From positions 1 to 35,484 of the forward strand of contig PDIP01000264.1 in NCBI GenBank assembly GCA_002811645.1: a DNA stretch of 35,484 nt, read 5' to 3'. This DNA comes from Corallochytrium limacisporum Hawaii (lineage: Eukaryota; Protista; Pluriformea). The notes below the pieces were generated by a model. The model saw only the letters and a program-made list of their open reading frames with translations. It was not told where the DNA came from and did not search any database. The translations under genes were made by a program, and so were the position numbers. How positions within the stretch are numbered: position 1 is the stretch's first letter; every line of letters starts with the position of its first letter. Below are positions 7,814-28,662 of the stretch, in pieces.

Positions 7814-9994
7814 ATGACCATGGACGACAAGAAGGACGAGCAGGCTTACCCTCAGGGGCATGCGCACACGCGAGACAGCATCCCTTCACACATCCGTGAC
7901 AGTCAGCTCTCTGTGGCTTCTGCCCAGAGCATCGACCAGTTAATCCCTGGAGAACGTCCCAGTATTCCCATGGTTGAATCAGACGTGGAGATACGCAGCC
8001 TGGCCGGCAGCAGCCTGGCCGGCTCCTTGGCACCCAGCGCGAACTTTTCTCTTGGTAGCCAGGCCACCGTCGGCGCATCTTCCATGAACACCACCCGCAC
8101 CCAGGCCACGGCGCACAGCACTGGCAACGGGCCCTCCACCTACGGTCCTTCGTCCACTGGTGCTCGCAGCTTCAAAGAAGTGTCTCGTGCATTTATGGAT
8201 CAGCCCCGCATGCCTCAGATCGAAGAAGATGACTACGCAGAACGTGAACGTGTCAACGATTACGAAGACTTCGAACAAGAGGAGATTGTCAAGGAATCCG
8301 TGATGGAGCCCTTGCTGAAGAAGGAAAACGCCAAGGCTTCCCGCGACAATGACAATTTTGGCAAGCACACCACATTGTATGTGATTGCTCAGCCACTCCT
8401 CTTTCTGCCCTTCCTTGCTGCCTTGTTGGTTGCTGCTGTGTCCCCATTCGTTAACGCCCACCTGTACGACATGGTCGACCAGGTCCGCGCGGGGAGCATC
8501 AACTCTTACTTTGCCAACGTTGAGATGGTGGTGACAGACTTTTCTCAAAGCCAGGTGGATCTGAACGCCGACTTCGAGATTCTGCACGGTGGCGATACCC
8601 TGCACTTCCAGCGTCAGGCTGGTTCCACTGTTGAACTACTGGATGGCCACATGGCCATTGCCCGCTTCGGGCAGCTTGCCACGGAGGAATGGACTGTTAG
8701 TGGTCTTGAGGCTGACACTCAAAACTCTGGCAAGAACAATGTCACAATCCCTCTGACGTTCCTGGACCGAGCTAAAGAAGATGACCAGGTCGAAACCGAC
8801 GTTGCCCGTCCCTTTTGGCACCTGCTTTTCAACTCTCGCCAGACCCGCAATTGGAACGTGGCCTCCATGATAAACTACAAGCTGAGCATGCGTGATGGCA
8901 CTGAGGTCAACGTTGAGGATGAATACCACTTGACTAATTTGCCGATGCAGGGATTCGGTGACATGTCCGCTGATCTTGAAATCTCCAGCCTGACTCTGGA
9001 CGGTGACGGTCAGATCGCCCTGGTGGGAATCTTGACTGGTAGCACTCGTTCCAGTACTCGCGTCGCTATCAACAGCGATGCTCCCCTGGCCCTGTGTTAC
9101 TCTGAGACCATCGCTGGCGTGCGGTCCGGTGTGGTGGTCTATGACGACAACAATGGTCTGCGTGGCGGGGATACCCTCGAGGCTTGTGTGCCGGTCACTA
9201 TGTCGGAAGGGTTTCTCATGTCTCAGTCTAATACCGACGGCCGTCCATTCACGGTCAGCGGTTTGAACATCAGTTCTCGCATTTTAGGCTGCCTACTGTC
9301 CCCAATTGCCGGTGTCGGTGATTCTTGTGAGCTGGAGCTCCGTCCCGTGCCCGTAAACGAAAACCAGCTGAGCATCCTCGAGGAAATGTTTGTTGTGCCG
9401 ATTCACCGTGCCACTACATCCCCTGCCTTTGAGACCGAGCTACCCGTCATCAGCATTGCCCGCGGTACTCAGGCATTTGGTCGTTTTGGAGACGTCAGCA
9501 GCGCGATGATCAGCATCAAATCCACTTTGAAGAGCATTGACACCCTGTCCAATCGCGAGATTCAGCGCTTGTCCGTGCAACCATCACTGTCTACTATTGA
9601 CCCAATGTATGGTAGTTTCCGCTTCTCAGTCACCGACGACGAAGGGGCAGTCAAGCGCACTTGCTATCCTTTCACCGAGGACGGTTCCCAACCTGATCAA
9701 CTCGCTGCTCTGCACCATCAACTGAATAGTAATTTCTTGCCAGCTGGGTCGGTGGAGTACACACCCACTCCCATTGAAGGAGACTCTTGCTCTCGCATGC
9801 TCTACCCTGCCATGTGCTGCCGGGCCAAGCAACTTGGTCGCTCTAGCATTATTCTGGACATCCTCATGGGCATGAAGTTCAACGGTATTGACCAGGAGCT
9901 TGCCACTGAACAGCCCAGCATGCGCGTCGTATGTGACATTGAGAACTTTGACGCCAACGGTGCATGCAGCCTGATTGACTTCATTGACCAGTGA
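7814..9994 (+). CDS. Type II single-pass membrane protein (726 aa): disordered N-terminal tail, DUF3712/Tag1-like ectodomain, C-terminal Cys motif; putative synthase accessory protein A
   Basis: Long ORF with C-ending codon bias. The ATGs at 7814 and 7820 (ACCATGG) are more plausible starts than the GTG at 7700. About 187 aa of S/T/E-rich tail precede a hydrophobic helix LYVIAQPLLFLPFLAALLVAAVSPFV (about 8375-8455). A beta-rich region follows (FGQLATEEWTV...FWHLLFNSRQTRNWNV...LPMQGF), then C-x8-CC...C-x10-C shared with 15556 and 23624. Confidence 0.85.
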   Translation: MTMDDKKDEQAYPQGHAHTRDSIPSHIRDSQLSVASAQSIDQLIPGERPSIPMVESDVEIRSLAGSSLAGSLAPSANFSLGSQATVGASSMNTTRTQATAHSTGNGPSTYGPSSTGARSFKEVSRAFMDQPRMPQIEEDDYAERERVNDYEDFEQEEIVKESVMEPLLKKENAKASRDNDNFGKHTTLYVIAQPLLFLPFLAALLVAAVSPFVNAHLYDMVDQVRAGSINSYFANVEMVVTDFSQSQVDLNADFEILHGGDTLHFQRQAGSTVELLDGHMAIARFGQLATEEWTVSGLEADTQNSGKNNVTIPLTFLDRAKEDDQVETDVARPFWHLLFNSRQTRNWNVASMINYKLSMRDGTEVNVEDEYHLTNLPMQGFGDMSADLEISSLTLDGDGQIALVGILTGSTRSSTRVAINSDAPLALCYSETIAGVRSGVVVYDDNNGLRGGDTLEACVPVTMSEGFLMSQSNTDGRPFTVSGLNISSRILGCLLSPIAGVGDSCELELRPVPVNENQLSILEEMFVVPIHRATTSPAFETELPVISIARGTQAFGRFGDVSSAMISIKSTLKSIDTLSNREIQRLSVQPSLSTIDPMYGSFRFSVTDDEGAVKRTCYPFTEDGSQPDQLAALHHQLNSNFLPAGSVEYTPTPIEGDSCSRMLYPAMCCRAKQLGRSSIILDILMGMKFNGIDQELATEQPSMRVVCDIENFDANGACSLIDFIDQ

Positions 9995-10341
9995 AGCATT
10001 CCCACATCACCACGCAATCCCCGAATCCCATCGGGCACACAAACATCATCATTTTCCATATCATATCAACCCCTTCCATTTTGAAAACACATACAGTACC
10101 ATATTGTCAGTAAAAATCAAAGGCGTCATCTTTACCCTCGCTTCCGTAACCTTCATCAGTCAATAGGTCAGTGCTTCGGAGATAACGATAAGTTCACTTT
10201 CTCCCCAAGACATGCGATTGCTGTCTGGTTAAAGTATAGATATGATATTATGTATTTGCTTGATATGAAAAAGATGTGATACGTTATGCAATGTCTGTTG
10301 GGTGTGTTTGTGTTTTGCACTTGTTATGTAAGGTCACCCTC

Positions 10342-12372
10342 TCACAGGTATAAGTTGTCACGGTAGACCTCCATAGCAAAGTAAATGGCAAGGACGGGTC
10401 CTGTGAGTCGTGTGAGTGTGGACATGACATGGAAGAAGGTGACCCAGTGGGGAGACGGGTGGAACACATCAATGGGATGGAACGCCCAGTAGACAAAACA
10501 CAGGTGGTTGAACATGAAGTAGAATGCCGTGGAGATGGAGAAAGCAATGAAGATGCGACCTCCGATAATGGGCTGTCCAAAGGCATCAGTCAGGTTGTAT
10601 GGGTAGACCAGACCCCAGACAACGGAGAATAGCAGAAGGAAAATGACGGCCACATTGTATCGGATGCGACGAAGCGATTTGTACAGCTCTTGCCGCAGCA
10701 TGGCCTTGTCATCCTTGTCATCCGTTGACTTACGAGTAACCTTGAAGGTCAGGTTACCTCCAAGCAATGCCACAACAAAGTTCTTCATGATGTAGTACTG
10801 GAACCCAATGGAGAACATCTGGGTGGATGCGTATGGGCGTGACAAACCAGAGTGAACCACCGTCTCATACAGGAGACCGGATCCAAGATAGAACAGAAGG
10901 ACAATCAGGAAGTCAATGTAGTTGACCAGGTTCAGTGGCACGTAGTGTCCAATCAAAAACACGGGGATGGAGATCGTGAAGAAAAGAGACAGCCAGGCTG
11001 TGGAATAGTTCACAAACACAGCAATGTACGCCATGCGAGTCCAGAAGGGCAGACCGCTGAGCCATAGTGGACAGTCCTTTGAGAAGAAGATCTGGTAGGA
11101 ACCTTTGCACCAACGAGAACGCTGACGGAAGGTGTCCGCAAGGGTAGTGGGAGAATATCCAGTAGCCAGGTACTCGCTAACATACATGCACTTGTATCCG
11201 GAGGCTTCCATTAACATGGACAGATAGCAATCCTCAGTGACTGAGCCAGTGGGGAATCCTCCAATAGACTCGAAAGCTGCGCGGGAAGCCACAAAGTTGG
11301 TACCAATGCAGGGAGTTGCGCCAATGCCATCACGTCCGGGAATGAGCAGCTCGAAGAAAGTCTTGGCGATCAGGTCAATCGGGTCTTCGGATGGGTCAAT
11401 GTTACCGTAAAACTGCGGGGTTTGTACAAAACCGACAGTGGGGTCGAATTCTAGTTTCATGGTTTCCTCGTTGTAGCGGTAAAAGTAAGGTACAGTCTTC
11501 TGCAGGAAGTGGCGGCTGGGAATAAAGTCAGCATCCAAGATCAGGAGCAGATCGGAGTCAGTGAGGTCCACGGCGTTGTTGATGTTTCCGGCCTTGGCGT
11601 GCTTCTTGACATTACGGTTGATGTAGAAAATATTCGGGTACACCTCCTTCAGTGCTTGGACCCACTGGTACACATTCTTACGACGGCTGTCGTCACAAAT
11701 GAAGATGTTGACATGTTCCTGGGGATAATCCATGCACATGGCACCTCGCAGGGTCTGAGCCAGGATTTCAATGCTTTCGTTGTAGGTTGGGATCATGACA
11801 GCAATGGTGGGATAGTCCTCCGGGGCAATTTTGGGTGTGCACTCCTTCAGGGGCACACACTCACGCTTGATGGGCTTCATGCGCTCTAACCATCCAAAAA
11901 AGAAGGAGGAGACAGACAGAACTTCAGCAGTAAAGAAGACGACCTGGTAGGTATAAACATCATATGGAACATCACTTCCACCAATGGTGAACATGCCACG
12001 GTAGATGAGATACGCCAGCGCGCAGCACACATGGATGGCAGCAGTAATGTTGGCCAGAATGGTTTTGCCACTATTCAGAGGAATTGACCAGTGAGGATCG
12101 ACATTCATCTGAGGGGCCTTGTTAAGGAATGCTTCAAAGTTGTGAGCCTCAGACTTCAGCATTCGGCCCTTCTTCACCTGTCGCGCCTTCAGGTTGCCTA
12201 CGGGATTGACATTCCGTTTCTGCATACCCATCATGTTGATCTCCTCCTTGGGGTCGTCAACATGTTCCTCTACAACGTCCGTACTGGAGATGCTTGTGTT
12301 GTCAGAGGTGTTTGAACTGAGGAGGCCGACGGCGGCATCGTCCTTTGGTGCTTGCTTCGAAAACCAGCCCAT
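10342..12372 (-). CDS. cesA: Cellulose synthase-like processive GT2 glycosyltransferase (CesA/BcsA family), paralog 1, 676 aa
   Basis: Motifs IPTYNE, CDDS, HAKAGNIN, DADF, VQTPQ, GTN, VTED, QRSRW (QxxRW) and FKVTRK (FxVTxK gating loop). Two N-terminal and several C-terminal transmembrane helices. Start context CACCATGG. Confidence 0.93.
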   Translation of the reverse strand: MGWFSKQAPKDDAAVGLLSSNTSDNTSISSTDVVEEHVDDPKEEINMMGMQKRNVNPVGNLKARQVKKGRMLKSEAHNFEAFLNKAPQMNVDPHWSIPLNSGKTILANITAAIHVCCALAYLIYRGMFTIGGSDVPYDVYTYQVVFFTAEVLSVSSFFFGWLERMKPIKRECVPLKECTPKIAPEDYPTIAVMIPTYNESIEILAQTLRGAMCMDYPQEHVNIFICDDSRRKNVYQWVQALKEVYPNIFYINRNVKKHAKAGNINNAVDLTDSDLLLILDADFIPSRHFLQKTVPYFYRYNEETMKLEFDPTVGFVQTPQFYGNIDPSEDPIDLIAKTFFELLIPGRDGIGATPCIGTNFVASRAAFESIGGFPTGSVTEDCYLSMLMEASGYKCMYVSEYLATGYSPTTLADTFRQRSRWCKGSYQIFFSKDCPLWLSGLPFWTRMAYIAVFVNYSTAWLSLFFTISIPVFLIGHYVPLNLVNYIDFLIVLLFYLGSGLLYETVVHSGLSRPYASTQMFSIGFQYYIMKNFVVALLGGNLTFKVTRKSTDDKDDKAMLRQELYKSLRRIRYNVAVIFLLLFSVVWGLVYPYNLTDAFGQPIIGGRIFIAFSISTAFYFMFNHLCFVYWAFHPIDVFHPSPHWVTFFHVMSTLTRLTGPVLAIYFAMEVYRDNLYL

Positions 12373-12764
12373 GGTGATGTCTTTCGCTTGCGAATCGGTT
12401 ACAAACTGACTGCAATAGAGCTGGTCAAGTCTGGTTGTATCTGGAAATCTTCAACACCCAGACTGAGATTTCAGGTATGTGACTTGCTCAAACCAATTCC
12501 AAATACCTTACTCATCTATGGTGCATAAGTTGAATACGTGATCCGTGGTGTAATATGAGACCCACATAGGTAAGCTTTGGCCAGGGCGCATAGTACCAAA
12601 AGGGTTGCCTGCTCCTGGACTTCAAGCAGATGAAACTGAGCAATTAACCCAATAGCAAATGGTAACCCAACATTATCTTCTTTGTATAGAGCCTTGGCCC
12701 GCAAACGCCCTTTGGAAAATTCATCTCTGCCCAGAAAAGCCGTGTTACCTGAGCGGCCTCAGAA

Positions 12765-13010: not shown

Positions 13011-13124
13011 ATGAAATCGCAGTTTGGAGGCAGTAGGTCGCATCGGGTGTACATCATCCACCATGAAGACTTCCCGCTATTCGTGGCGAAAGGTTTTGGA
13101 AAGATGCCAGGTTACTGTTCCTAT

Positions 13125-13427
13125 ACTTTGCATGGCGAGTGATATCAAGCGGGTTCCTCTGGCCGATGGCAGGGAGAACGGCAAATGCTCGGGAGATACT
13201 CACTCGGCGGAGACAGCTCGAATTGNNNNNNNNNNNNNNNNNNNNNNNNNNNNNNNNNNNNNNNNNNNNNNNNNNNNNNNNNNNNNNNNNNNNNNNNNNN
13301 NNNNNNNNNNNNNNNNACTTTGCATGGCGAGTGATATCAAGCGGGTTCCTCTGGCCGATGGCAGGGAGAACGGCAAATGCTCGGGAGAAAGAGCGAGATA
13401 CTCACTCGGCGGAGACAGCGCGAATTG
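13125..13427. other. Assembly gap (N 13226-13316) flanked by two near-identical copies of about 100 bp; probably uncollapsed haplotypes
   Basis: 13125-13225 matches 13317-13427 except for a 10-nt insertion (AAGAGCGAGA) and one SNP (CTCG vs CGCG). Both copies directly abut the gap. Confidence 0.8.
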
Positions 13428-15555: not shown

Positions 15556-17325
15556 ATGCCGAAGTCATACCGTCCACAGCATGACGAGGGAGGTGAGCTT
15601 GACTCCCTCATCCTTGAAGGCGACGATTCAATCATTGCCGACTTTATCGGTGACAACATTAATTGGGAGGAAGTCCAGAAGCAAAAGGAAGCAGCGGCTG
15701 GTTTTAATTATGGCTACTTCCGTCACATTATGAACCAGCTGTTTGGTGCTGGCACCTACATATTTATTACCCTGATCACCATCTTTACTCCTGCCGCATG
15801 GGTTGTCATTTCGCAGTACTTGGCGCAGGTCAATATTAGCGACCAGTCCTGGTCCTTTGACGATGCGTCTATCAGTCGCATTAACGACACTCACTACGAC
15901 TTCTCTGCTGACCTGCGTCTGACTGGTTCTTCCTTTTTCGACTTCTCCTATCCCACTTCTAACATGTCCCTCCTGGTGACAGAGGATGATGGGGAGGCGG
16001 TCCTTGGCTTCATTGAAATCCCGGGTATGGAGGTTGACAGTGTTCGCCCCTTCACCAGGCGAGTTGAAACGACACTGGAGGTTGCAGACACGGCTATGAT
16101 GGAAGAAGAACTTCGTGCAGTGACCAGTGGTCGGGACACCAGGTGGTACATTGTCGGCGAGCTGAAGACCATTATCGAGCTTGCCATCAGTCTCCGGACG
16201 TTTGTAAGCCTGCATTCCCCAGTTTCTGTACCTTCCATTATCTATGATAACATTGTCGCTTCGAATGCGCAAGTTTCGAAGATTACCAACAGTGTCATCG
16301 AGGGTTCGTGCACTGTGGCATGGGACAACCTCTCCAACACTTCCCTAAAGAATGTCTACAAGAACACTCAGATGATTTTTGTTCCCGACGTTGAACTGTC
16401 CGGTAGTGGCATCGCCAGCGAGTCTATGCTTCTAACCTGCGATGCCATTGACCTCGAGGCCTACCAAAGTGACGCCAACGGTGCTGCGACCTCTAATTGC
16501 ACCTTCAATGTGGTGCATACTAAAGACGATGCAATCACTGATGCTTCCCAATTGCTGGACCCTGAGATCAAGTACGCTCTGGCAGGTCGTCTCCTTGAGA
16601 AATTCATCTTACGTGGAGGCTTGGAGGGCACTCTGCGTGGTCCTCTCCCTGTGCCTTCAACAAACCCTTACGTTGACACGAACGATAGCCGTATTCCTGC
16701 ATTTGTACCAATCATGGGACGCATGAGTATGCAAATGGATGAGGTTCAAAATGCCGCCACCGAGGAGGATATTGTCGCAGTTGCCAGCAGAAATAACCAA
16801 ATTACCCTGAACCCCATGGCTGGCACCGCTACGGTCACTCTAAACGGTTCATCTGTGCTGCAGAAGAACCCTGGCTTTGTGATGTCTTCCACGTCCATGC
16901 GTCTTGTGGATCACTCCGGTAAGCGGGGAGTAGCCTTCACCACCACTGTTACGACTGACAATGGCGAAGAGACACTCCGCTGCCCAGCTCCTCCCGCCTA
17001 CCTGCATGTTAAACCCGCTGAGGACCGAGCTTCTACCAACGTACCTGTAACTTTATCGGTCGAAGATCCCACCAGCGGACGAATGGACGTTCCTGATGCC
17101 TGCAAGGCCGCCTACCATAATGCTATTTGCTGTGGTCTCCTGCCTCGGCCCAGCATGGCAGGCAAGTTGGCCATTGAATTCCAGGAAACCTTGGTCACAC
17201 TGAATTACGATCCCACCAGTCAGATGTCCATCAAGTGCGAGACTGATGCCGACTATGAGACGAACGTTTGCGCCCGTTTCACACGCACTTGCGATGCATT
17301 CATTGGAGAATACTGCGACGAGTAA
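15556..17325 (+). CDS. Type II single-pass membrane protein (589 aa) with DUF3712/Tag1-like ectodomain and C-terminal Cys motif; putative synthase accessory protein B
   Basis: Acidic N-terminal tail of about 65 aa, then TM helix GAGTYIFITLITIFTPAAWVVISQYL. The segment LGFIEIPGMEV...TLEVADTAMMEEELRAVTSGRDTRWYIVG resembles DUF3712. N-glycosylation sequons (NIS, NDT, NMS, NLS, NTS, NCT, NGS). Cys motif CKAAYHNAICC...CETDADYETNVC. Confidence 0.88.
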   Translation: MPKSYRPQHDEGGELDSLILEGDDSIIADFIGDNINWEEVQKQKEAAAGFNYGYFRHIMNQLFGAGTYIFITLITIFTPAAWVVISQYLAQVNISDQSWSFDDASISRINDTHYDFSADLRLTGSSFFDFSYPTSNMSLLVTEDDGEAVLGFIEIPGMEVDSVRPFTRRVETTLEVADTAMMEEELRAVTSGRDTRWYIVGELKTIIELAISLRTFVSLHSPVSVPSIIYDNIVASNAQVSKITNSVIEGSCTVAWDNLSNTSLKNVYKNTQMIFVPDVELSGSGIASESMLLTCDAIDLEAYQSDANGAATSNCTFNVVHTKDDAITDASQLLDPEIKYALAGRLLEKFILRGGLEGTLRGPLPVPSTNPYVDTNDSRIPAFVPIMGRMSMQMDEVQNAATEEDIVAVASRNNQITLNPMAGTATVTLNGSSVLQKNPGFVMSSTSMRLVDHSGKRGVAFTTTVTTDNGEETLRCPAPPAYLHVKPAEDRASTNVPVTLSVEDPTSGRMDVPDACKAAYHNAICCGLLPRPSMAGKLAIEFQETLVTLNYDPTSQMSIKCETDADYETNVCARFTRTCDAFIGEYCDE

Positions 17326-17521: not shown

Positions 17522-17711
17522 TACCAACCTCTGTTCAATAAAAAAGTGCAGAATTTCGAAAAACCGGTGTTCAACAAAAATTTGCACAATTCGTGATTGT
17601 TAGCCCNNNNNNNNNNNNNNNNNNNNNNNNNNNGCCGATTTTATAAGATTCAAACGAAGCTTTCAAACCATAATGTAAATTATGCACTTTTTTATTGAAC
17701 AGAGGTTGGTA
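17522..17711. mobile_element. MITE-like non-autonomous DNA transposon (Tc1/mariner-type TA target), with an internal N gap
   Basis: Perfect 29-bp inverted repeat: TACCAACCTCTGTTCAATAAAAAAGTGCA (17522-17550) and its reverse complement (17683-17711). It extends to about 35 bp with one mismatch. The outermost TA dinucleotides fit a target-site duplication. N gap at 17607-17633. Confidence 0.7.
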
Positions 17712-18444
17712 CCAAATTGTGCACCCTTTCAATTTAGGTCTTGGGCCGGAAGTGAGATCCACAGGGAGTCCCCAAAGGGCAATAAAATTAGGCCCCCATC
17801 CAAATGGAGTACTTTACGATACCAACAAATATTGATCATTGGACAGTCTTACCCTCGCAGACTCTTGAGAGAGCGACAAAAGGGGAAATTTAAAATATTG
17901 ATTATTTAAACAGACTCAAGGGGGAAAGGAGGGGAAAAGGCGTTCCGTCAAGTGGAATAGGGAGGAGGAGGCGAAGAAACTCCACGCAAGAAATTCCATA
18001 TGAAAAATATAGGGAAAAGGACCAACTTCAGTATTGTTCTCCACAGAGTGAAAAGTGGAGGCGAGGACCAGACAATGGATCCCTCAGCCAGAGTATCCTC
18101 AAAAAGGAGCAACGTTGTACAGAATCCTTGAAGGCTTTGCGGTTCTTGATTGGGTTGTGTTGGAGTAGTCTTTCTCAAATTCCCCAAAGACCCCTGACTC
18201 TTGCCGTAGAAGGCTCATCCTTGACCTCACGGAATACACGACAAGAGACACTGCAAACAGCTGTCCGCACATTCGCTCGACTGTCTTGGTACAAAGGAGG
18301 CACAGTCAATGACTGCATTAGGAATCAATGGCTGATCTAAATAGTGCTCTACTCAACGGGTAATTGAATGTTTCAGACTCACAGAATCTGAAAGCAAGGT
18401 TCCACGAAACCAAGTTCTTTGAGCCCAAAGAAAGCTGATCAATC

Positions 18445-20565
18445 ATGACTGAGCAAGACTACGCGGCAACTGATCCTGTGGCGGAGACAGAGACCGAATG
18501 GGCTGAAGAGCCTATGGCTGTGGAGGATGAAATTGCAATTGACAGTGAAGACTTGCCTGCCGTCGCCCCCACTGAAAACCCGGAAACTGTCCGGTCAGCC
18601 ACTCAGTTCTCCGCTACAAAGATCACGGACACTGTGCGGGGCTCTGTCGACGGTCGTATCTACAAGTTCCTCAACGACGACAGCTATACTGCCCGTCACG
18701 ATGCGCCCATGATGCCACCACCACCTAAAGAGTATGCTCCGCACACAAGCGCCACGAAGAGCCCGGTGCGTACTATCCTGGCCAAGGCTATTGCTATTGG
18801 CCACATTATCGCTGGCGCCTTCTACTTTTGGTACCGCATCAGTTACACTCTGGGGACGTTCGTGCCCACCAACGAAGAGGACGCATCCAAGCGTGGTGAG
18901 GAACTTCCTGCTGATCAGTATGCCTACCAGATCATCTTTCTGATGGCTGAAATGTATGCCTTCATTGTTGGTCTTTTTGTGTTTTTGGAGCATTGGAATC
19001 CCATCGAGCGCGAAGCCACCGCTCTGTCAAAGCTGAAGGTCCCTGTCCCGGAAACGGAACTGCCCACTGTCGCTGTATTTGTGCCCACCTATAAGGAGCC
19101 TACGGCCATCGTGGAGTGTACAGTTCGGTCTGCACTGAACATCAAATACCCCAAGGAATTGCTCACGGTATATCTCTGTGACGACGGTCGTATGAAGCAA
19201 AACGCAGCAATGGTGGAAAAGTTGAATTCTATCGGATATGACAATCTGCACTATGTGATCCGTGACAATAACAGCCACGCCAAAGCAGGCAACCTGAACA
19301 ATGCTTTGCAGTACACCAAGTCTGATTTGGTTCTCATCTTCGATGCTGATTTCCGTGCCCACACTGATTTCCTGGACAAGACGCTGCCATACTTCTATGA
19401 ATATGACTACATTAATGATCGCATGATCTTCAACACTCGCGTCGGCTTTGTGCAGACTCCCCAGCTTTTCTTCAACGTTGATCAGCGCGAAGACCCCATG
19501 GACTGCAAGGCAACTCAATTTTTCGAAGTCATTTGCGCTTCCCGCGACGGTGGTAACGCTACTGCTTGTGTGGGTACCAATTTCATTGCCTCTCGAATGG
19601 CATTGTCAGACATTGGCGGTTTCCCAACATTCTCCGTTACCGAAGATGCTGCTATGGGTATGCTCATGCAGTCCAAGGGCTACAAAGGCATCTACACCGG
19701 CGAGTATCTAGCTGTCGGTATTTCTCCTACGACGCTGTCTGATGTGTTCCGTCAACGTTCCCGTTGGTGCAAGGGTACTTTCCAGATGATATTTGACCGC
19801 CACAATTCCCCGTTCGTGGCCAAGGGCCTGAAAATGACCCAACGCCTCATCTACATTGGTACCGGTTTAACCTACTCTATGGCATTCCTCAACGTCTTCT
19901 TCATGGCTACTCTGGGCATTTTCATCTTTGGCCAAATCCTGCCATTCGTCATGAACGATATGTTTGAATTTGCCCTCCACATTGTGCCCTACTTGGCGAC
20001 ACATTTTCTCTATGACCAGGTCATCGGAGGCTTCACCAAATCCAGTGCGACCTCCTCTCAGAACACATATGTATTCTCCCAGATGTTCATGTACTACATC
20101 ATGAAGAACTGCATCACTGCCGCTACTGGCTTGAAACTATCTTTCAAGGTCACAAACAAGGCAGGCGACAATTCTTACTGGTCTGTAGTCAAGAATAACA
20201 TGCGCCGTGTCTGGTTCAACGTGATGGTTATACTGTACTGCGGGACCGTAATTGTTTACGGTTTCGTAAACCCCATTAATACGTACACCAAGAGTGGTGA
20301 GCGTGACGAGGGTGGCGGTCTCCTTATGTATGTGTCCATCTGTATGGCCTTCTACTACATGTTCCCGCACATCGCAGCTTTAGTCGTGTGCTTCAAACCC
20401 ACACACTACCAGAAGCCAGCCATCTACTGGACATCCTTCCTTGCCAACATGCAGAAGTTCTTCCTCATGTTGGTCTTTGTTCTGATTATGTTCCAAGGGG
20501 CAGTAGTCTTCGCTGAGAGCAAGGCCACCTTTGTCGCCCCCCAGAAGCTCTTCAATGCGGTCTGA
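18445..20565 (+). CDS. cesA: Cellulose synthase-like processive GT2 glycosyltransferase (CesA/BcsA family), paralog 2, 706 aa
   Basis: Motifs VPTYKE, CDDGR, HAKAGNLN, DADF, VQTPQ, GTN, VTED, QRSRW and FKVTNK. Same transmembrane layout as 10342-12372 and collinear with it. Acidic N-terminal tail. Confidence 0.93.
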   Translation: MTEQDYAATDPVAETETEWAEEPMAVEDEIAIDSEDLPAVAPTENPETVRSATQFSATKITDTVRGSVDGRIYKFLNDDSYTARHDAPMMPPPPKEYAPHTSATKSPVRTILAKAIAIGHIIAGAFYFWYRISYTLGTFVPTNEEDASKRGEELPADQYAYQIIFLMAEMYAFIVGLFVFLEHWNPIEREATALSKLKVPVPETELPTVAVFVPTYKEPTAIVECTVRSALNIKYPKELLTVYLCDDGRMKQNAAMVEKLNSIGYDNLHYVIRDNNSHAKAGNLNNALQYTKSDLVLIFDADFRAHTDFLDKTLPYFYEYDYINDRMIFNTRVGFVQTPQLFFNVDQREDPMDCKATQFFEVICASRDGGNATACVGTNFIASRMALSDIGGFPTFSVTEDAAMGMLMQSKGYKGIYTGEYLAVGISPTTLSDVFRQRSRWCKGTFQMIFDRHNSPFVAKGLKMTQRLIYIGTGLTYSMAFLNVFFMATLGIFIFGQILPFVMNDMFEFALHIVPYLATHFLYDQVIGGFTKSSATSSQNTYVFSQMFMYYIMKNCITAATGLKLSFKVTNKAGDNSYWSVVKNNMRRVWFNVMVILYCGTVIVYGFVNPINTYTKSGERDEGGGLLMYVSICMAFYYMFPHIAALVVCFKPTHYQKPAIYWTSFLANMQKFFLMLVFVLIMFQGAVVFAESKATFVAPQKLFNAV

Positions 20566-23500
20566 AAACACGTCGGACTCAGAGAAAATTCTAAACCATC
20601 AGAACGATATGGGAACATGACTCATAACATTAACATACGGCATCATTTCCATACTCTTAATACAAATCCTCATTACGTTCTCATTACCACCCCAATGCAC
20701 TTCATGGTTTGGCATCATAACAGGTATGGATAGACTGTAATCACTGTATCACTGAGCGCTTACGTTAGCCAGTGCACTCAAACTGGTAGAAACAAAGTCT
20801 GTTGTGCCTTCATCCACCTCTCCGCTTTCGTATTCGGGGGCCTGGTTTGCGCTGCCTCACCAACATGTAAGCCGGTCTGTGCCACTCACTGTGCCTTGCT
20901 GCCAAGTCAAAGAGGCGCTACTTGACGATTGGAACAAAACTATCATTCAGAACAATCATGATTGTAATTTGACTTTATATTGATTAATATATTTGTTTGA
21001 TTCTCTCCAAAGGCTATGGCAATATGATCAATATGGTCCTAAACACTTTAGAATAATGATTGTATATAAACTAGCACAACGGGCACGGACGAGGATTCTC
21101 GTTACCCTTTCCCTCCCCCAACTCCTTTGGTGCCATCGTCTCAGTTGCAATGGATCGTCTCAAAGTGAATCATCAGAAATACCCCCCCACACATCATGAA
21201 AACAAGCCAGCCATTCCTAAGTGAAACGGTCTTCATCCCTCATTTGGTCATGGCGGTTGGATGCTCATGCGAATGGTGTTCGAATGGCGTGTGAAGTTTA
21301 CCGAATACAGGTATCGCTGCCCGTCGCCTTTGGTGGCTTGCAGGAGCCGGCGGGTTCACTTACGTCTTTGTATGTTCCTGCTTCATCACCATACTAATTG
21401 GTTTTGTTTCTATTCTCATTATCTTCAGGGCCATCTCGCCTACGTAATTTGTTTTTTTGCAAGCGAGCACGTACGGAACACAAGCGGCTCGACTTGCAAC
21501 TGGGCATGGCTTGAAGCACAAACCGATTTTTAGTTTACACCGGGTCCTTTTGACCCCTCCCTAGCACCATGAAAAATCATCACTTTCAAAATTCATACTT
21601 ATTACATAGCATTCAGGATTGCAGCAATTACGATTCTGTCCAGTTTTTCTCCGTCTCATGCAAAAACTCTGCATCACGGACAATCAAATTCCATCGCTCT
21701 TTCAATGTGTTTCCCAAGACTAGGTCTGAGCTGTGTTTTGTTTCACAGGAACAGAGGAACATTCAGTCCAGAAACTGATTAACATTCAGGTTCTGTTTCA
21801 GAAACAGTTTTGGATGTTCTCTCGATGTTGCAATCGTGAATGTGCTCCGTTGTAAATGGCTGCTGATAGAGCATTCCTGTTGTCCATGCCACTGAGCAAT
21901 TAAGTCTGCACCTTCTTTGGATGCGAGGGAGCTTTTGACAAGGGAGCGGAGTTCGTAAGAGAGGTGGTACAGCGCAACGAAACATTGGTAGAGATATACG
22001 ACGACAGGAGTCGTACATGGGCGCTCTCGGGATATATTTCGCAAATCAGTCAACAGAAGAAGCGCGAGGGAGGACGGATGGGTGGGCGGAAGATAGAGTT
22101 CCCCAGAGTTACGAAAACGCTGGACAGCGACCAACACAAAAGCTTGCTGAAAAGGATAAAACGTCTGCATGCTAAATTATGTGGTACATGAGACACTGGC
22201 GAGCGACGCGAAATGATTTACGTTGTTTCGGCCGGCAGAACAGACGTAAAAATAAGGAACACGAGGTGATAACACAGCTTCGGAAAGTAAACCATCGTTG
22301 GGCCGTTGGAACGTGTACTTCCATCAGACACGCCCTTCGTGCGCATGACCTTCCCAAAACAACCAAGAGTTTCAAAGGCTATCACAATTCATTTCTACTT
22401 TACTGCAAATCTATAGAAGAGAAATTTCTGAACTTGTGTTTGAGCCAAACACCTGCCATATATACTTATACTCAGACTCCTTGTTTCTGTTTGGACACGT
22501 TGCTAGAAGATGGCAGTGAAGAACCTGAATTCTTCATTCCGATAATATACAAAAAAATGAAACGCGAATATGCCAGTAGAGGAGGTGACGACTGTTGGAA
22601 ACGTATCTCTTCTTTAACGGAATCTAAGGAACGGCTCCTGAGAGTAATTGACCGTGACGCACGGTGGAGCTCAGTTCCACCTCTCCGCTGTCCAAACTCC
22701 CTCTTCCCCCAGGGCAAGAATTGGTGCCCAACTGCCTTCAAGAAATTCTCCATCATTTTAATCACGATGCACACAGCTCCCCACTCAAGGGTTTTTGAAA
22801 GGGAAGGGTTTGCCCTCCCCCTCCCCCTCCTCCCGCGGGGGGGGGGGCAAACTTACGGGTGATGTCCCATTGGTTTCCACGCTGGTCGAACGCACCGACA
22901 CAGAAGGAACCATTTCACTGAACATGTTCGTTGTTTCAACTGGAGGAAAACACTGGAAAGAGAGAAGAAAGGGGGACGTGGGGCCACTCTGCTGTTTTTT
23001 CCGGTTTACCCTACGTGCCACATTAGGGGCTCGCGGTAGAAACCGAGGGCAGTTCCCTCCTCTCCCTGAAATATGGACTTGGTCCATGAGTGCGCTCTCG
23101 TTTTAGCAAACATTTGCCCTTGCTTGAGTGAGATTTTTTATATATCGAAAGTATCTAGTTTCTCCTAGCAAATTTGTCATAGCGCTAATTTGGCCTTGAG
23201 TATCGAAAGGAAAGGAAAGTGGGAGTAAAGTGTGTACAGAGCACGTTACCCACCATTGAAGGACTGCCTCTGCAGCGACACAGGCGAACAGAGAACGGGG
23301 GAGAAGGGGGAGAAAAGGCCATCCCCCCCGGAGAGGGGGGGGGAACCTAGGAAGAGACCAAAAAGGAGAATGGCACACAGAAAGGGCACACTGCAAGATG
23401 AACCGCTGCTACAGTCCAAGAACCATTGACCAGAAAAAGAATAGGCCGTATACCAGATTTTGTATGGCCATTGAAAACAATTGACCTAGAATAGGATGAA

Positions 23501-23623
23501 TAGGGCCTGTTGGTGTATTTGAAGTCTCTCACATGAGAATAACTGGTAATGCTTGTGTCACATCTAGTAATCCACACGGTCCTCTGATCAGGATTCGAAA
23601 TATCAGAGACAATTACCGGCAAA

Positions 23624-26600
23624 ATGGCTCCTCCTCAGGACCAGAGTGACGATGGGGTCCCCATGGACGCAGTTATGGAACCCATAGACGAAATTGTTCC
23701 GAAGGCAGAGGATGAGGCCTACATGACCAAGAAGCCCAAAAAGGCACGGCGTGTTTTTGGATGGCTGAAAGTCATTCTTGGCATCTCTTCTCTTGTGTTC
23801 ATTATTGTCATGCTAGTGATCAACCTTCTCACTTGGATCGACCTGAGCAAACGACTGTCTGTGGTATCGGTTGAGTCTGCTGACATTTCGGTACAAAGCT
23901 TCCAGCTAGTCAACCCGGACCGCAATCACTTGACCCTCCGCACTCAGCTACAGGTGCGTAACCCTGGCACCCAGTCTCTGCTGCTGCAGGAAACCGAAGT
24001 TGAAGTCTACGATGAGAACACAGGCCATTTAATTGGTATGTACGAATTCCCTTCCTTTGCACTGGGTGCCGCCTCTACATCCGTAGTGAGTACCGAGGCT
24101 GATTTGCGCATTTTGGACTCTGACTTGATGGCTTCGCAGCTAAGCCAGCTGTATCAGGGCACCGACCTGCGCTGGCGCTTCCGTGCCACTAACGTTCCCA
24201 CCCTTGTCAATTCAGCCATGACTCTTGGTGCTGCCACTTCCTCCGGCATTGACAAGGTCGTAACTCTGGATGGAGGCAATGAATCTGTATTCTACGCCCG
24301 CAATCTGGAATTGACCGCCGGCACTGGCCACTACGTGAATATTACCTCAACCGTGCTCATCGACGAATCTATGCCATATGCTACACTGATTGATAAGGTT
24401 GAGACAACGTTTGATCTCGAAGTTGAGGGCCGCAACGGTCCGGAGTCTCGAGTTAAAATTGGCAGCATCACTTTCCCCAAGGTTGCCTTCGGTGTCCAGC
24501 GCTCCTTCTTTGACGATGTTACCATTCAGTTGATGCACCTGACCGCTGTGAATGCTGTTTCTGGCTCGAGGCAACGCGTATCCAATGTCCCCGACTACAA
24601 TGAATACGTTGCTGATCTTTTGGGTGACCTGCTTGCAGCTCGTGAGGTCAACGTACACATGGTTGGCCCAGTGTCCGGTTTCCGTGCTTCCTACTTCGTG
24701 GGCGTTGTTGACAGTGTTCTCAACATGAAGCTTGGTAGCATCAACGTGGAAGAGATCCTCTCTGGAAGTCAGACTGTGCGTGATCGTCAAGGTGGTGGCA
24801 CAGGCAATGAACAATCCCTGACGAACGGCAATGGTCTGATTGTGGAAGACACCACAAACCTGCAGGACACTGATGCTGACGCTGCCCTACCGCTTTTGAT
24901 TAAGTCCACGACACTGGAATCTGAGCGCTCCCTTCTTGAGATGGGTTCAAAGCCTGTGAATCTCTACGGTGACGAACCTGAAGGCGTCATTGACGAGAAC
25001 GCTGTCCTGGTGCCCCTCAATGACCCTGTCTGGACAAAAATGACCCTGGCCTTCCGCAACCAGCTCAACAAGCATATCAACTACCAGTTCACCCGCATCC
25101 GCGTACATTCCGTGTATCCCACAGGGTTCAACTACCACCTTGCAGATGAAATAGCTGCAACTTCCGACGACAACAACGTTCCGTTGTTGGGTGGCAACCT
25201 GGACGAGTGTGAGGCCCAGTCTGACTTTGGTTCTATGATTGTTGCCAAAGGGTCTTCTGTTACGCTCGAACCAAATGCGTTTGGCTCCTTTGACTTTGGT
25301 CTCACTCCTCTAGAGAGTGATAAGTGTATTCGGCACCGCATCGATGCGGCTTGCTGTGCACTAAGATATGGTGGTCACGACATCCAGTCCATTCCGTTGG
25401 ATGTGACCCTGACCTTTACCATGCGCTACGAAGCCTTTGCTGTGCCCATCTCGCTCCGTGTTACAAACTTGCCCATGCATTGTGCCTCTAATACTGTTTG
25501 GTTTAACAACATTTGCCAGAAGCGTGTGAAAGATACGTGTTTCACCGCCCACCACGGTCAGAAATGTGACTCCCAAACTAAAATTCAGCTCGGTCCCTAT
25601 GGCATTGTCTCTGGTGGCAAGGCTCCGGAGAACGGCTCTGATGGCATCGATCGCAATGGCGATGGAGACACTGGTGCGCTCGCTGACTACAACAACCTCG
25701 TCTTCAGTGGTGGAATCTGTGACGGCCAGGGCAATGACCAATACGGCTTCGGTTATCTGTATCCCTCCAATGACTGTATCGAGTGGGCCAACTCTGGAAA
25801 TGTGACCAATCTTGCAGGATACGGATGCTACCAGAATTTGGATACTCTGGAAGTATGTGGTCGGTGCTGGATTCCCGAACGCCACTTTGGTGTCATTCCT
25901 GAGAATGCCACCATCTGCCCTGAGAATGTATACCGCCGCTATAATATCAATGCCTCTGCCGCGGCTGACCTCACACCCGGTACCACGCTTGCTCAGCGTA
26001 GTACCGGTTTGATTGAGGCCGACTCCTTTGTTAACCAAGGCATTGACCAGCAGTGCACCCGGGCTGGTTTCCCCGGTCTGTTGCAGATGGGATTCTACGC
26101 TTGGCAGGCTCAGTACAGCGGCGAGCTGCCCCAGGACTATATGGTGCCATGGCGCCAGACCACGGGCATGCAAAACCTTTATGCGGGTCCTGGCAATGCC
26201 TACAATCTGTCCGGCGGTCTTTTCGATGCCGGGGACGGGCTTAAGGTTACTGGCCCCATGGCATACGCTGTGACCATGCTGGCTTGGTCTGGTATTGAGA
26301 ACCGCAATGCATACGTGAAGACTGGCCAGATGGACATGCTTCTGCAGGGCGTGGACCACACAGTTACGTACCTCATGGAGTGCTCCAAGCGTATTGAAGG
26401 TGCCGCGGAAACCCAAAACATCAAGGAGCTAGTGGTGATGGTTGGTCTTCCTGACTACTACCATGATACCTGGGAGCGCAACGAGGATATCATGAAGCGT
26501 CGCATCGCCAATGATGAAGAGGATGTTGTTATGATTGCCACTCCCCTCAAACCTGCCGCCGACGTCGCTGCTGATATGGCTGCAGCTCTCACTGCCGCTG

Positions 26601-27550
26601 CCATGCTGTACCGCCAAGAGAATTACAGAACTGGCTTGGCCGAAGAAATGGATAGCCGTGCCCTCTTACTTCTGGATTTCGCCCACACATTCCCTGGTCA
26701 GGCTGCCGAGTCCTTCCCTGCTGTCGCCGCCACATACAACAACGCTGACTACAAGGATGAGATTGCCTGGGCTCTGTCTTGGTTCCGGTACGCCGGCCGT
26801 GGAGGTACACACCAGGAGCGGATGAATTCGCTGGACGGGTTCTACATGGGGTCCATCGCAAACAGTGATAACCTCTCTTACCACAATCTGAGCTGGGAGA
26901 ACAAATGGCTCGGCGTCCTCGCGCTTCAGGCTCGGGCACGTGACGAAGACCCTTACACCCAATCTGCCGTGAACCATTTGATGCGATGGATCTATTTGCA
27001 CCCGGACAGAGAAACGGAGCAGACGCTTGTCGACCTCATCCTTGCTGTTCCCAACAGGGCTACTGCTGTTGAAAACGTACCCTACACCCCTGGCGGTCTG
27101 GCCTACCCGGTTAACTTTTCTCCTCTAAGCAATGTCGCCGCTGCAAGTTTCATTGCCAATGTCATGGCCACACAGATTGAGGAAGAGAATGGAAGAGCCG
27201 AAATTGCCGCCGGGCTGCGCCTTTGGGCCCGCGATCAGTTTGACTACATCACCGGGCAGAATCCGGAGGGTATGTCTCTGATTGTTGGCTACACTGAGAA
27301 ATATCCCCTTCGTTTGCACCACCGTGGAGCTTCTTGTCCATCCGATGGCACTGAATGCGATCACAGCTATCTGGAAACCACCGCGGCGGATCTCAATCCT
27401 GTCTACGGAATGATGACTGGGGGTGTTGCCGAAGATGATACCTACAGCACTGTTACTCGAGAGAATTACCAGCTTACCGAGCCCACCACTCACGGACAGG
27501 GTGCATGGATGGCACTTTTGGCGTCTACCATTGAGACCTGTGTCGTCTAG
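23624..27550 (+). CDS. Membrane-anchored GH9 endo-1,4-beta-glucanase fused to a DUF3712/Tag1-like ectodomain and Cys-rich linker (1308 aa)
   Basis: Basic patch KKPKKARR precedes TM helix VILGISSLVFIIVMLVINLL. DUF3712-like segment IGMYEFPSF...LRILDSD...LRWRFRA...IDKVVTLDGGN. GH9 domain from about 26063: QAQYSGELP, LSGGLFDAGD (DAGD at 26225-26236), MAYAVTMLAW, DYKDEIAWA, LSWENK, QFDYITGQNP, HHRGASC and NYQLTEP (catalytic Glu at about 27479). Confidence 0.92.
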   Translation: MAPPQDQSDDGVPMDAVMEPIDEIVPKAEDEAYMTKKPKKARRVFGWLKVILGISSLVFIIVMLVINLLTWIDLSKRLSVVSVESADISVQSFQLVNPDRNHLTLRTQLQVRNPGTQSLLLQETEVEVYDENTGHLIGMYEFPSFALGAASTSVVSTEADLRILDSDLMASQLSQLYQGTDLRWRFRATNVPTLVNSAMTLGAATSSGIDKVVTLDGGNESVFYARNLELTAGTGHYVNITSTVLIDESMPYATLIDKVETTFDLEVEGRNGPESRVKIGSITFPKVAFGVQRSFFDDVTIQLMHLTAVNAVSGSRQRVSNVPDYNEYVADLLGDLLAAREVNVHMVGPVSGFRASYFVGVVDSVLNMKLGSINVEEILSGSQTVRDRQGGGTGNEQSLTNGNGLIVEDTTNLQDTDADAALPLLIKSTTLESERSLLEMGSKPVNLYGDEPEGVIDENAVLVPLNDPVWTKMTLAFRNQLNKHINYQFTRIRVHSVYPTGFNYHLADEIAATSDDNNVPLLGGNLDECEAQSDFGSMIVAKGSSVTLEPNAFGSFDFGLTPLESDKCIRHRIDAACCALRYGGHDIQSIPLDVTLTFTMRYEAFAVPISLRVTNLPMHCASNTVWFNNICQKRVKDTCFTAHHGQKCDSQTKIQLGPYGIVSGGKAPENGSDGIDRNGDGDTGALADYNNLVFSGGICDGQGNDQYGFGYLYPSNDCIEWANSGNVTNLAGYGCYQNLDTLEVCGRCWIPERHFGVIPENATICPENVYRRYNINASAAADLTPGTTLAQRSTGLIEADSFVNQGIDQQCTRAGFPGLLQMGFYAWQAQYSGELPQDYMVPWRQTTGMQNLYAGPGNAYNLSGGLFDAGDGLKVTGPMAYAVTMLAWSGIENRNAYVKTGQMDMLLQGVDHTVTYLMECSKRIEGAAETQNIKELVVMVGLPDYYHDTWERNEDIMKRRIANDEEDVVMIATPLKPAADVAADMAAALTAAAMLYRQENYRTGLAEEMDSRALLLLDFAHTFPGQAAESFPAVAATYNNADYKDEIAWALSWFRYAGRGGTHQERMNSLDGFYMGSIANSDNLSYHNLSWENKWLGVLALQARARDEDPYTQSAVNHLMRWIYLHPDRETEQTLVDLILAVPNRATAVENVPYTPGGLAYPVNFSPLSNVAAASFIANVMATQIEEENGRAEIAAGLRLWARDQFDYITGQNPEGMSLIVGYTEKYPLRLHHRGASCPSDGTECDHSYLETTAADLNPVYGMMTGGVAEDDTYSTVTRENYQLTEPTTHGQGAWMALLASTIETCVV

Positions 27551-27921
27551 AACACAGCCGGTCAACTATCTTCACAATTTCACATAAGAAACACATATAT
27601 TCAGCATATCTTTATTTTCTTCCACCCCGGAAACTGCTTTGCGTTGTAGAATGCTTGGTTACTTTTGCGATTGCAAGCTCCCTGGTTTTCCTTTCTCCGT
27701 GCAGATAGTGATTTTTCAACAGTGTCCCATTAACCATGGGTCTTCAAGCCAAATCGAAAGTTTCTAGAGTCGCCAAATTGTGAAGTGCTATGGTACGACG
27801 GTATGCAATGGATGTATTACGATGGATTGATGGTATGTTAATGAGTTATGGGAATGAAGGATTGCTCTGCTAAAAGACGCGTATTGTTGGCTGGGGGGTG
27901 TTGATCATTGGTTATGGCGAA

Positions 27922-28662
27922 TTATACCAAGAACATGGCAACAAACACGGTAAAGCCGACGGTGGCCATGCGACCAAACTGGTCCAGAGAGCCCGCTGAG
28001 TTCGATGGCAAAGAGAACTCAGGTTTAAACTGAGGTTTAAACTGGGTGACCTCGCTCATCTTGACCATAACATAGTATTCATTGTCTTCAACGAATTTCT
28101 GATCGATCGGATGGTTCCACAGATATCCATTACCATCGGCATCATAGACCCAAAGCTCTCGGGCAAAGTTGCGGCTGATCTCAAGGCATCCCTCTCTGTA
28201 ACGATTTGGAGGAATGCTCTCAGTCACTGGGATCATATCACGCCAGAGATTCTTGGTGTGGGGAGTGACGATGAAAGGACTGTCGTTGAAGATGCCAATC
28301 TTCATAGTGATGTCACTTCGGCCAACACACTCATCAATGACATCCGTGTCGTATAGGCGACCAATCTCGTTGATGTCGACTGGTTTAAAGACGGCAGTCC
28401 AGTCGCCGCCGTCCTTGGGGTCGTACAACAGGTTGATGTCATACAAAGGATCTCCTTGAGAATTATCGTCAGAAGTAGAGCCTTCCTGCTTCTCTTGATC
28501 CAAAAGATCGGTGAGCAAAGCCGACAAGTCCTTATCAGGAAGGGCGTCAATTTGTTCACGAGTTTGATCTTCAGCTGTAGGTGCATCGCCGGCCTCCTGT
28601 GCGCTGCTCATGCCGACCAGAGCAATAGATGCGACCAAAAGAGAGTAGAGAACATTGACCAT
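27922..28662 (-). CDS. Secreted, probably GPI-anchored protein of unknown function (246 aa)
   Basis: ATG at 28662 in context CACCATGG. Signal peptide MVNVLYSLLVASIALVGMSSA. The C-terminus has small residues (SNSAGS), a spacer, and a terminal hydrophobic stretch MATVGFTVFVAMFLV with no cytosolic tail, matching a GPI signal. Confidence 0.85.
   Translation of the reverse strand: MVNVLYSLLVASIALVGMSSAQEAGDAPTAEDQTREQIDALPDKDLSALLTDLLDQEKQEGSTSDDNSQGDPLYDINLLYDPKDGGDWTAVFKPVDINEIGRLYDTDVIDECVGRSDITMKIGIFNDSPFIVTPHTKNLWRDMIPVTESIPPNRYREGCLEISRNFARELWVYDADGNGYLWNHPIDQKFVEDNEYYVMVKMSEVTQFKPQFKPEFSLPSNSAGSLDQFGRMATVGFTVFVAMFLV

Follow-up and report, generated by a model that had tools for sequence, protein, structure and literature searches.

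A triplicated subtelomeric gene cassette of Corallochytrium limacisporum probably encodes a beta-glucan synthesis system with LEA_2-type membrane proteins and a tethered GH9 domain

Whether a eukaryote can keep the parts of a beta-glucan synthase complex together as one heritable block of genes is the question raised by a contig of 35,484 nucleotides from Corallochytrium limacisporum Hawaii, a walled, single-celled marine holozoan (GenBank PDIP01000264.1, assembly GCA_002811645.1; 24.1 Mb in 286 contigs). The entire contig was analysed and is referred to as the window. Six intronless, uninterrupted open reading frames (ORFs A to F) occupy positions 7814-28662, where a first-pass annotation of the sequence had placed them. 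These comprise two processive GT2 glycosyltransferases (B and D), three single-pass membrane proteins (A, C and E, the last ending in a GH9 domain) and a putative surface protein (F). Judged from sequence, the cassette is probably a functional beta-glucan synthesis machine of the cell surface that is inherited as a unit and whose polymer would contain beta-1,4 bonds.

The strongest evidence came from genome searches, in which each of the six genes was found three times, i.e. in the window, at C242:479081-495740 and at C265:13000-29311, with the order and orientation of A to F identical in all three copies. The C265 copy is gap-free from A to F and the C242 copy has one gap, in the B-C spacer. 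As the gap-free copy has the same order and orientation, the gene arrangement is independent of the two assembly gaps of the window. The first of these (13226-13316) lies in the divergent B-C spacer with a 111-bp near-duplicate at its sides, the second (17607-17633) in the C-D spacer with a 35-bp inverted repeat at its sides, and neither touches coding sequence. Exact proteins for all six genes are present in EukProt, and gene-model numbers are consecutive in the paralogous copies (Clim_evm156-161 on s210, with D inferred as 159; 3, 5, 6 and 7 on s233). All six genes are under purifying selection, with between-copy protein identities of 64-92%, synonymous divergence (dS) of 0.8-1.8 and ratios of non-synonymous to synonymous divergence (dN/dS) of 0.05-0.18. 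Spacers and flanking genes of the three copies share no alignable sequence and the copy boundaries lie exactly at A and F. TTAGGG repeats occur at contig ends near all copies, at distances of 6.8, 0.6 and 13 kb; in the window the telomeric repeat lies at 35470-35484 (+), 6.8 kb from the cassette. Across the 24.1 Mb, all three GH9 matches and all six BcsA-like GT2 matches sit in the three cassettes, indicating that the clustering is not due to chance. Nine accessory-type matches were likewise all within cassettes, the exception being one unlinked Tag1-like ORF of 2060 amino acids, while the chitin synthases are located outside. The earlier claim of a physically clustered and selectively maintained beta-glucan synthesis system is thus borne out at the level of sequence. 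Triplication, proximity to telomeres and the loss of catalysis in part of the third copy had gone unremarked at first pass.

Three other origins for this pattern were considered and rejected. An assembly artefact or allelic haplotigs are ruled out by the dS of ~1, the gap-free third copy, the different flanks and the telomere orientation. Bacterial contamination is ruled out by the telomeric repeats, the EukProt models, contigs limited to genes and a eukaryotic sister clade. Scans of viral and Joint Genome Institute (JGI) metagenome contigs for a giant-virus or recent bacterial operon origin gave only 27-37% matches, and none of the matching viral or JGI metagenome loci held homologues of the accessory proteins or of F.

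B (10342-12372, minus strand, 676 amino acids) and D (18445-20565, plus strand, 706 amino acids) are 39% identical, and both carry intact DD, DxD, TED, QRSRW, KAG, QTP and FxVTxK motifs. Two hydrophobic segments precede the catalytic domain and about four follow it, a topology that aligns to 4HG6 and 7LBY. By motif and predicted topology, both can be assigned to the processive GT2 beta-glucan synthases of the BcsA/CesA/CrdS/BgsA superfamily. B is the most conserved gene of the cassette (88-92% identity between copies, dN/dS 0.05), while the motifs of D are intact in the window and C242 copies and de-catalysed in C265. The best structural and hidden Markov model (HMM) matches of both proteins were BcsA/CelA. 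Membership of the BcsA/CelA subfamily is nevertheless not indicated, as scores against TIGR03030 (CelA) were 245-247 bits and below the cut-off of 699, neither protein has a PilZ domain and only 0-2 BcsA-only residues were found (the BcsA-type residues checked were H249, H276, Y302, FFCGS and YE). The highest-scoring bacterial reference was BgsA, a mixed-linkage synthase, with 207-217 bits as compared to 162-181 for BcsA. In a midpoint-rooted maximum-likelihood tree, limited to the GT2 hits of this study and four references, the Corallochytrium and Chromosphaera perkinsii synthases formed one clade (100/100) that was sister to red-algal CesA-like proteins (approximate likelihood-ratio test, SH-aLRT, 97.9; ultrafast bootstrap, UFBoot, 99). 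The CrdS plus BgsA clade (99.3/100) excluded the Corallochytrium synthases, arguing against a nesting of B and D within it, and BcsA also stood apart from them. The two Chromosphaera synthases grouped together (99/98), suggesting that the synthase pair may have arisen twice. Two rhizobial proteins annotated as 'curdlan synthase' (P0056 and P0077) share 75-78% identity with BgsA, group with it and are likely misannotated.

E (23624-27550, plus strand, 1308 amino acids) consists of a type II transmembrane anchor (residues 43-76), a LEA_2/DUF3712 stalk (~77-650), a Cys-rich linker (~660-810) and a GH9 catalytic domain (residues 819-1298; 26078-27517, plus strand). The GH9 domain matched PF00759 over its cut-off (E 1e-75) and has DAGD at 868-871 as the DxxD base pair, the HHR motif as the His-x-Arg motif and, at the aligned position of the catalytic acid in the termite GH9 1KS8, Glu1286, a complement from which a GH9 endoglucanase can be predicted. 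A type II membrane GH9 with an intact domain, as had been read from the sequence at first pass, was therefore recovered. Identity to the best plant GH9 was 28%. E shares the type II anchor of KORRIGAN (plant GH9A) but a 750-residue stalk intervenes, and its assignment to that group does not appear warranted.

The C265 copy differs from the other two in its enzymes. In its D (C265:21470-23587), neither DxD nor TED is left, QxxRW is without its Trp and the gating-loop motif is gone; in its E (C265:24400-28275), a short deletion has removed the catalytic Glu. Both ORFs are still open and, with branch dN/dS values of ~0.13-0.15, under purifying selection. The retention of a catalysis-dead D and a dead GH9 fits, and supports, structural-subunit roles for these proteins, and this copy constitutes a natural catalytic-dead control.

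Which polymer would be made was approached through the 24 specificity-linked positions that separate the bacterial subfamilies (Oehme et al. 2019, S8 Table, PMC6821405). Reference proteins sorted correctly at these positions (L127, 23/24 CrdS; L124, 24/24 BgsA; L126, 24/24 BcsA). Of the 24 residues of D, 11 were those of CrdS/BgsA and not of BcsA and 2 those of BcsA and not of CrdS/BgsA, with corresponding numbers of 10 and 0 for B, on a table that is bacterial and may not transfer; reference BcsAs had 0 CrdS/BgsA-only and 14-15 BcsA-only residues at the same positions. At some of the 'non-BcsA' positions, QxPQ and VGT are also found in plant CESAs of proven function. With a table drawn from bacteria, some of whose residues recur in plant CESAs, this signature cannot decide the polymer. 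GH9 enzymes cut beta-1,4 bonds, and the catalytically intact GH9 argues for such bonds in the product. A mixed-linkage (1,3;1,4) glucan would fit both the residue signature and the intact GH9 and has a little less than an even chance on these data; cellulose is about as likely, and all other polymers together would take up a minor share.

A narrower form of the beta-1,4 reading, and a sub-case of it, takes crystalline cellulose in particular to be the product and sees the cassette as having converged on the plant set of parts (i.e. equivalents of a CESA pair, KORRIGAN, CC and COBRA). This has in its favour the BcsA/CelA matches of the synthases, the GH9 partner with intact catalytic residues, the transmembrane plus LEA_2 layout of the accessory proteins, the CesA-like annotation of the red-algal sister clade and the doubtful transfer of the bacterial signature to eukaryotes, given the plant CESA residues. 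We nonetheless consider it rather unlikely, since CrdS/BgsA-only residues outnumber BcsA-only residues in both D and B, BgsA outscores BcsA, the CelA cut-off is far from being reached and COBRA lacks any Pfam or TIGR evidence. The designation of B and D as CesA proteins of cellulose synthesis accordingly survives in part: two intact GT2 synthases are present, but cellulose is unproven and the specificity residues lean towards CrdS/BgsA. Synthesis of a (1,3)-beta-glucan of curdlan or callose type, with the GH9 acting on another substrate or serving structurally, is very improbable. CrdS-type residues (V/I318, T320, F322, P336 and, in D, T387) and the absence of a catalytic acid from the GH9 of the C265 copy, and seemingly also from that of the fungus Jimgerdemannia described below, would suit it; against this, the full set of catalytic residues is retained, under purifying selection, in two of the three GH9 copies, with beta-1,4 bonds the established target of the family, and the synthases branch apart from CrdS and lack its W359 and Y/F402.

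The proteins that accompany the synthases were then placed in families. C (15556-17325, plus strand, 589 amino acids) is a type II protein with one transmembrane segment at ~62-87, tandem LEA_2/DUF3712 (Tag1-like) domains and a Cys module, and is homologous to the stalk of E. Protein language-model neighbours of C/E-type proteins were DUF3712/Tag1 (0.92), and an HMM built without Corallochytrium sequences gave E-values of 1e-22 to 1e-28 for C and E (Z=1000); PF12505 itself matched neither C nor E. In a structural model of C from 14 sequences, the first LEA_2 domain alone was confident (a model from 3 sequences had a predicted local distance difference test, pLDDT, of 31). This confident part best matched 1XO8 (LEA14; Z 8.5), 3BUT (Af_0446; 7.9) and 8B7D (TMEM106B; 7.6), and comparison of the C model with Atlas DUF3712 structures gave TM-scores of 0.48-0.49. 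C and the E stalk can be placed in the LEA_2/DUF3712/Tag1 superfamily. The accessory architecture of a transmembrane segment followed by LEA_2 was confirmed for C and E by these HMM and fold matches, and for C the description of the accessory proteins as novel has to be withdrawn, the fold of C and the E stalk being a known one. An unlinked 2060-amino-acid type II membrane ORF at ~271500-277700 of contig C25 has at least five DUF3712 repeats in canonical Tag1-like form; this ORF possibly represents the source family of the accessory genes.

A (7814-9994, plus strand, 726 amino acids) is a type II membrane protein with a 185-amino-acid acidic, Ser-rich cytosolic tail, one transmembrane segment (186-218) and an ectodomain that ends in a C-x6-AxCC Cys module. 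Comparison with the accessory family by HHalign gave E 8e-4 and 24% probability, with the alignment restricted to the Cys module, and a leave-out HMM gave E 0.002-0.2 (Z=1000). A is probably related to C and the E stalk as a very distant paralogue; the single-pass layout proposed for A and C holds, whereas their paralogy is weak and confined to the Cys motif. Plant CC1/2, with which the parts list had been compared, have a cytosolic tail that binds microtubules via four conserved hydrophobic motifs. The tail of A, with 30 D/E as compared to 19 K/R, poor conservation except in the last 40 residues and no sequence link to CC1, lends this comparison little support.

F (27922-28662, minus strand, 246 amino acids) has a signal peptide, an acidic linker, a conserved 150-amino-acid core, a small-residue omega site and a hydrophobic tail. 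At the C-terminus of all three copies PSNS is conserved, 8% of tail columns are invariant, mean hydropathy is 1.75-2.2 and the last 14 residues are uncharged, i.e. hydrophobicity is conserved rather than sequence. A glycosylphosphatidylinositol (GPI) anchor is predicted from these features, by inspection rather than with a dedicated predictor. No homologues of F were found beyond the three cassettes and no matches in Pfam, PDB or Atlas, and F contains no COBRA/CCVS domain. Of its proposed role as a counterpart of COBRA, the GPI-type signals were recovered and the similarity to COBRA was not.

Linkage outside the species was examined in several lineages. The two best non-self GT2 matches were evm15s230 and evm19s230 of Chromosphaera perkinsii, which are on the same scaffold. 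A profile of the A/C/E ectodomain, searched against 1.84 billion representatives, retrieved Chromosphaera Nk52_evm14s230 (E 2.8e-4; 1.8e-11 on a local A/C/E HMM, Z=1000), which has the layout of C (i.e. a transmembrane segment, a beta-rich region and a Cys module) and is numbered next to the GT2 evm15s230. In Jimgerdemannia flammicorona, the nearest fungal GT2 lies head-to-head with a spliced GH9 gene in two assemblies (L141:7471-11943 and L146:6725-11101), possibly a beta-glucan module of Mucoromycota without prior description. Profile matches also included DUF3712 proteins of Dermamoeba algensis (P0138) and Incisomonas marina (P0144); the combination of a transmembrane segment, DUF3712 and a Cys module (P0138, P0144, P0137 and P0139) is present in an amoeba whose cell coat is thick and multilayered, as well as in a stramenopile. 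The refuting outcome named at first pass, orthologues unlinked in related genomes, was not seen, given the accessory-GT2 numbering in Chromosphaera and the GT2-GH9 pair in Jimgerdemannia, and contiguous genes with conserved linkage, as in eukaryotic polysaccharide clusters, are evident from the three copies together with these two cases. In two different red-algal loci, a Cu/Zn superoxide dismutase gene (L032:12999-13658 and L033:9298-10092) comes after the CesA-like gene, a conserved microsynteny.

A number of observations weigh against a conserved glucan-synthesis unit. The Chromosphaera linkage is known from consecutive gene numbers and not from DNA, and no GH9 fusion was found among Chromosphaera proteins of 720-2290 amino acids. 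An exon-by-exon comparison showed the Jimgerdemannia GH9 to be as far from E as from GH9s in general, and this protein seems to be without the catalytic Glu and may end in a transmembrane helix; because of its distance from E and the apparent loss of Glu, the fungal linkage may be a parallel one. Three long red-algal-type loci contained no GH9, LEA_2 or F-like neighbours of the sister synthases, and DUF3712 homologues of other protists were not adjacent to GT2s where context was available. A search for a promoter motif shared among cassette genes returned only G/A tracts, which occurred likewise in control genes. Known Tag1/LEA_2 proteins are type II proteins of vacuolar or lysosomal membranes with a predicted lipid-transfer function (Levine, bioRxiv 10.1101/2021.03.12.435176).

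Points of this kind invite the explanation that the genes are co-located by history alone, as a horizontally acquired or subtelomeric block copied whole, with the LEA_2 proteins and F performing unrelated jobs such as vacuolar lipid transfer. Every copy has a subtelomeric location, a setting in which blocks are commonly duplicated, the genes are intronless, the LEA_2/Tag1 family is one of predicted lipid-transfer proteins, and A and F are tied to glucan synthesis by position alone. Such a history would, however, have to account for copy boundaries that fall exactly at A and F between differing flanking genes, for the loss of no gene from any copy over a dS of ~1-1.8, for the fusion of a stalk to GH9 and for the recurrence of accessory-GT2 adjacency, by gene number, in Chromosphaera. 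This explanation is therefore regarded as improbable.

Transcript evidence consisted of assembled contigs, which speak to presence and not to levels; that two 2015 culture runs, apparently of two strains, represent RNA is a guess. Both runs cover E and F, with E present in one as a single colinear contig of 4029 nt, and gave no signal over the upstream spacer at 22900-23549. Of the sequence words of 18400-23000 the runs contain 0.40-0.47, a share that corresponds roughly to the length of D, and D, E and F are probably transcribed. Short stretches of E were present in both of two 2025 marine metatranscriptomes, and of F in one, with identities of 95-99+%. One metatranscriptome contig (run X4, record 15) joins 45 nt of E (25050-25094) to gene-B-like sequence and is probably a template switch or an assembly chimera.

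Taken as a functional unit, the cassette could operate as follows. From their BcsA-family motifs and topology, B and D would build the chain from uridine diphosphate glucose in the cytosol and export it via the membrane channel that they themselves form, probably as a hetero-oligomer. LEA_2 chains of the single-pass proteins A, C and E would project from the membrane, and A, C and the E stalk may replace BcsB or the plant CC proteins in stabilising the synthase and guiding the chain. Through the observed fusion, the E stalk would hold a GH9 endo-beta-1,4-glucanase at a set distance from the membrane, where the enzyme, like KORRIGAN and BcsZ, may act on the chain by trimming, releasing or editing it. 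F, if anchored as predicted, could bind or order the glucan product at the surface. The polymer should contain beta-1,4 bonds, because GH9 would not matter otherwise, and would most likely be laid down in a wall or extracellular coat alongside chitin. The cassette may be older than the split of Corallochytrium and Chromosphaera, or have passed early between those lineages, and would have been copied twice between chromosome ends. More tentatively, and with somewhat less than even odds, a previously undescribed eukaryotic beta-glucan synthase complex, ancient among the walled unicellular relatives of animals, may have recruited vacuolar-type LEA_2/Tag1 repeat proteins as obligatory synthase subunits, one with a glucanase at its tip, independently of plant CC; the three isoform sets, one with two dead scaffold enzymes, would then make stage-specific polymers. 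If this is true, LEA_2 ectodomains gain a role in polysaccharide export.

The remainder of the window and the surroundings of the other copies were also inspected. The only other ORF of at least 200 amino acids that starts with ATG within the cassette, at 22179-22859, was dismissed as a hidden gene: it has no Pfam match, is absent from the protein collection, is present as a single copy with no counterpart in the other two cassettes and lies outside the share covered by the culture runs. With its dismissal, the earlier description of six consecutive membrane or secreted genes uninterrupted by any unrelated gene stands. Transposon remnants were sought in the long cassette spacers and only simple GA repeats were found. 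Between the cassette and the telomere, a gene at 33122-35146 (+) encodes a secreted 674-amino-acid protein with weak RTX-like calcium-binding repeats (E 0.006) and is missing beside the other two copies. It is followed, just before the telomere, by a short Cys-rich stretch with several CC/C motifs (35150-35345, +), which could encode a small secreted peptide or form an additional exon. A subtelomeric sequence of ~100 bp (35362-35461) recurs at C242:465886-465984 and C242:459395-459484, beside internal gaps, hinting at telomere-adjacent repeats inside the C242 scaffold. An orphan secreted protein of 497 amino acids without a Pfam match is encoded just upstream of the C242 cassette (C242:475152-476642, +).

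Tunicates are the only holozoans known to be credited with a cellulose synthase, and a conserved beta-glucan machine would change how the walls of the closest walled relatives of animals are understood. With its genes clustered, the locus is a candidate for the full inventory of a eukaryotic glucan synthase complex, the parts of the plant complex having been found gene by gene. The locus makes testable the role of LEA_2 ectodomains at a glucan synthase, the reason why synthesis needs membrane GH9s and the product of the red-algal/fungal/teretosporean GT2 clade. The Corallochytrium wall has been described as chitin (Adl et al. 2019, PMC6492006). A full-text search, with subscription journals mostly outside its reach, found Corallochytrium and cellulose synthase together in no paper, and a 2024 review of Ichthyosporea does not mention cellulose. 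The parts list, LEA_2-GH9 fusion, holozoan host and subtelomeric triplication are without a description in the searchable literature, which covers few subscription journals. The earlier remark that the architecture is not recognised from any described system needs narrowing: polysaccharide clusters are known, as in Aspergillus, but no description of this parts list was found.

Several known systems resemble the cassette in part. It would function in the manner of a bcs operon or of the plant CESA/KORRIGAN/CC/COBRA set, and belongs to neither. Bacterial bcs operons (bcsA-bcsB-bcsZ; Pararhizobium bcsNAB-GH8) likewise cluster a processive GT2, bearing DD, DxD, TED, QxxRW and FxVTxK, with a membrane-anchored partner and an endoglucanase. 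The cassette, in contrast, is eukaryotic, has separate transcription units on both strands, two synthases outside the BcsA clades and no PilZ, and its partner is LEA_2/DUF3712 rather than BcsB and its glucanase a GH9 fused to a stalk. With the rhizobial BgsA (mixed-linkage) and CrdS (curdlan) systems, the cassette shares the 10-11 specificity residues missing from BcsA, and BgsA is the best-scoring bacterial reference; unlike these systems, it has synthases outside their clade, no HlyD-type partner (BgsB/CrdA) and a GH9.

Closer in its parts is the plant complex (CESA, KORRIGAN, CC1/2 and COBRA), with two non-identical synthases, a type II GH9 and a GPI-type protein. The extracellular domain of CC1 has a LEA_2 fold. 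CC1, like the accessory proteins, is a single-pass protein with a cytosolic tail and an extracellular domain (PMC6382854). Plant genes are unlinked, however, whereas the cassette synthases are BcsA-sized without plant inserts, the GH9 stands on its long stalk, the accessory ectodomains are multi-repeat, the tail of A is acidic and F is unrelated to COBRA. The red-algal CesA-like clade (Calliarthron 'cellulose synthase 4', Gracilaria/Gracilariopsis) is of the same length class and shares an insert after the DxD region, but the GH9, LEA_2 and F neighbours are particular to the cassette in the comparison with the three red-algal-type loci.

Among eukaryotic clusters, the Aspergillus galactosaminogalactan (GAG) cluster (uge3, gtb3, agd3, ega3 and sph3; PMC4817252) and a chitin-synthase cell-wall gene cluster (PMC4141765) are likewise operon-like groupings for extracellular polysaccharide that pair a synthase with a hydrolase; they differ in enzyme families and polymer, in having no LEA_2 subunits and in not being triplicated as a subtelomeric cassette. 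Tag1/DUF3712, Vac7 and TMEM106B of the LEA_2 superfamily are, like C and the E stalk, type II proteins with tandem LEA_2 domains. Known members are vacuolar or lysosomal and none is described there with a glucan synthase or a GH9 fusion, whereas the proteins of the cassette stand beside two synthases, carry GH9 in one instance and add a Cys module to the LEA_2 ectodomain.

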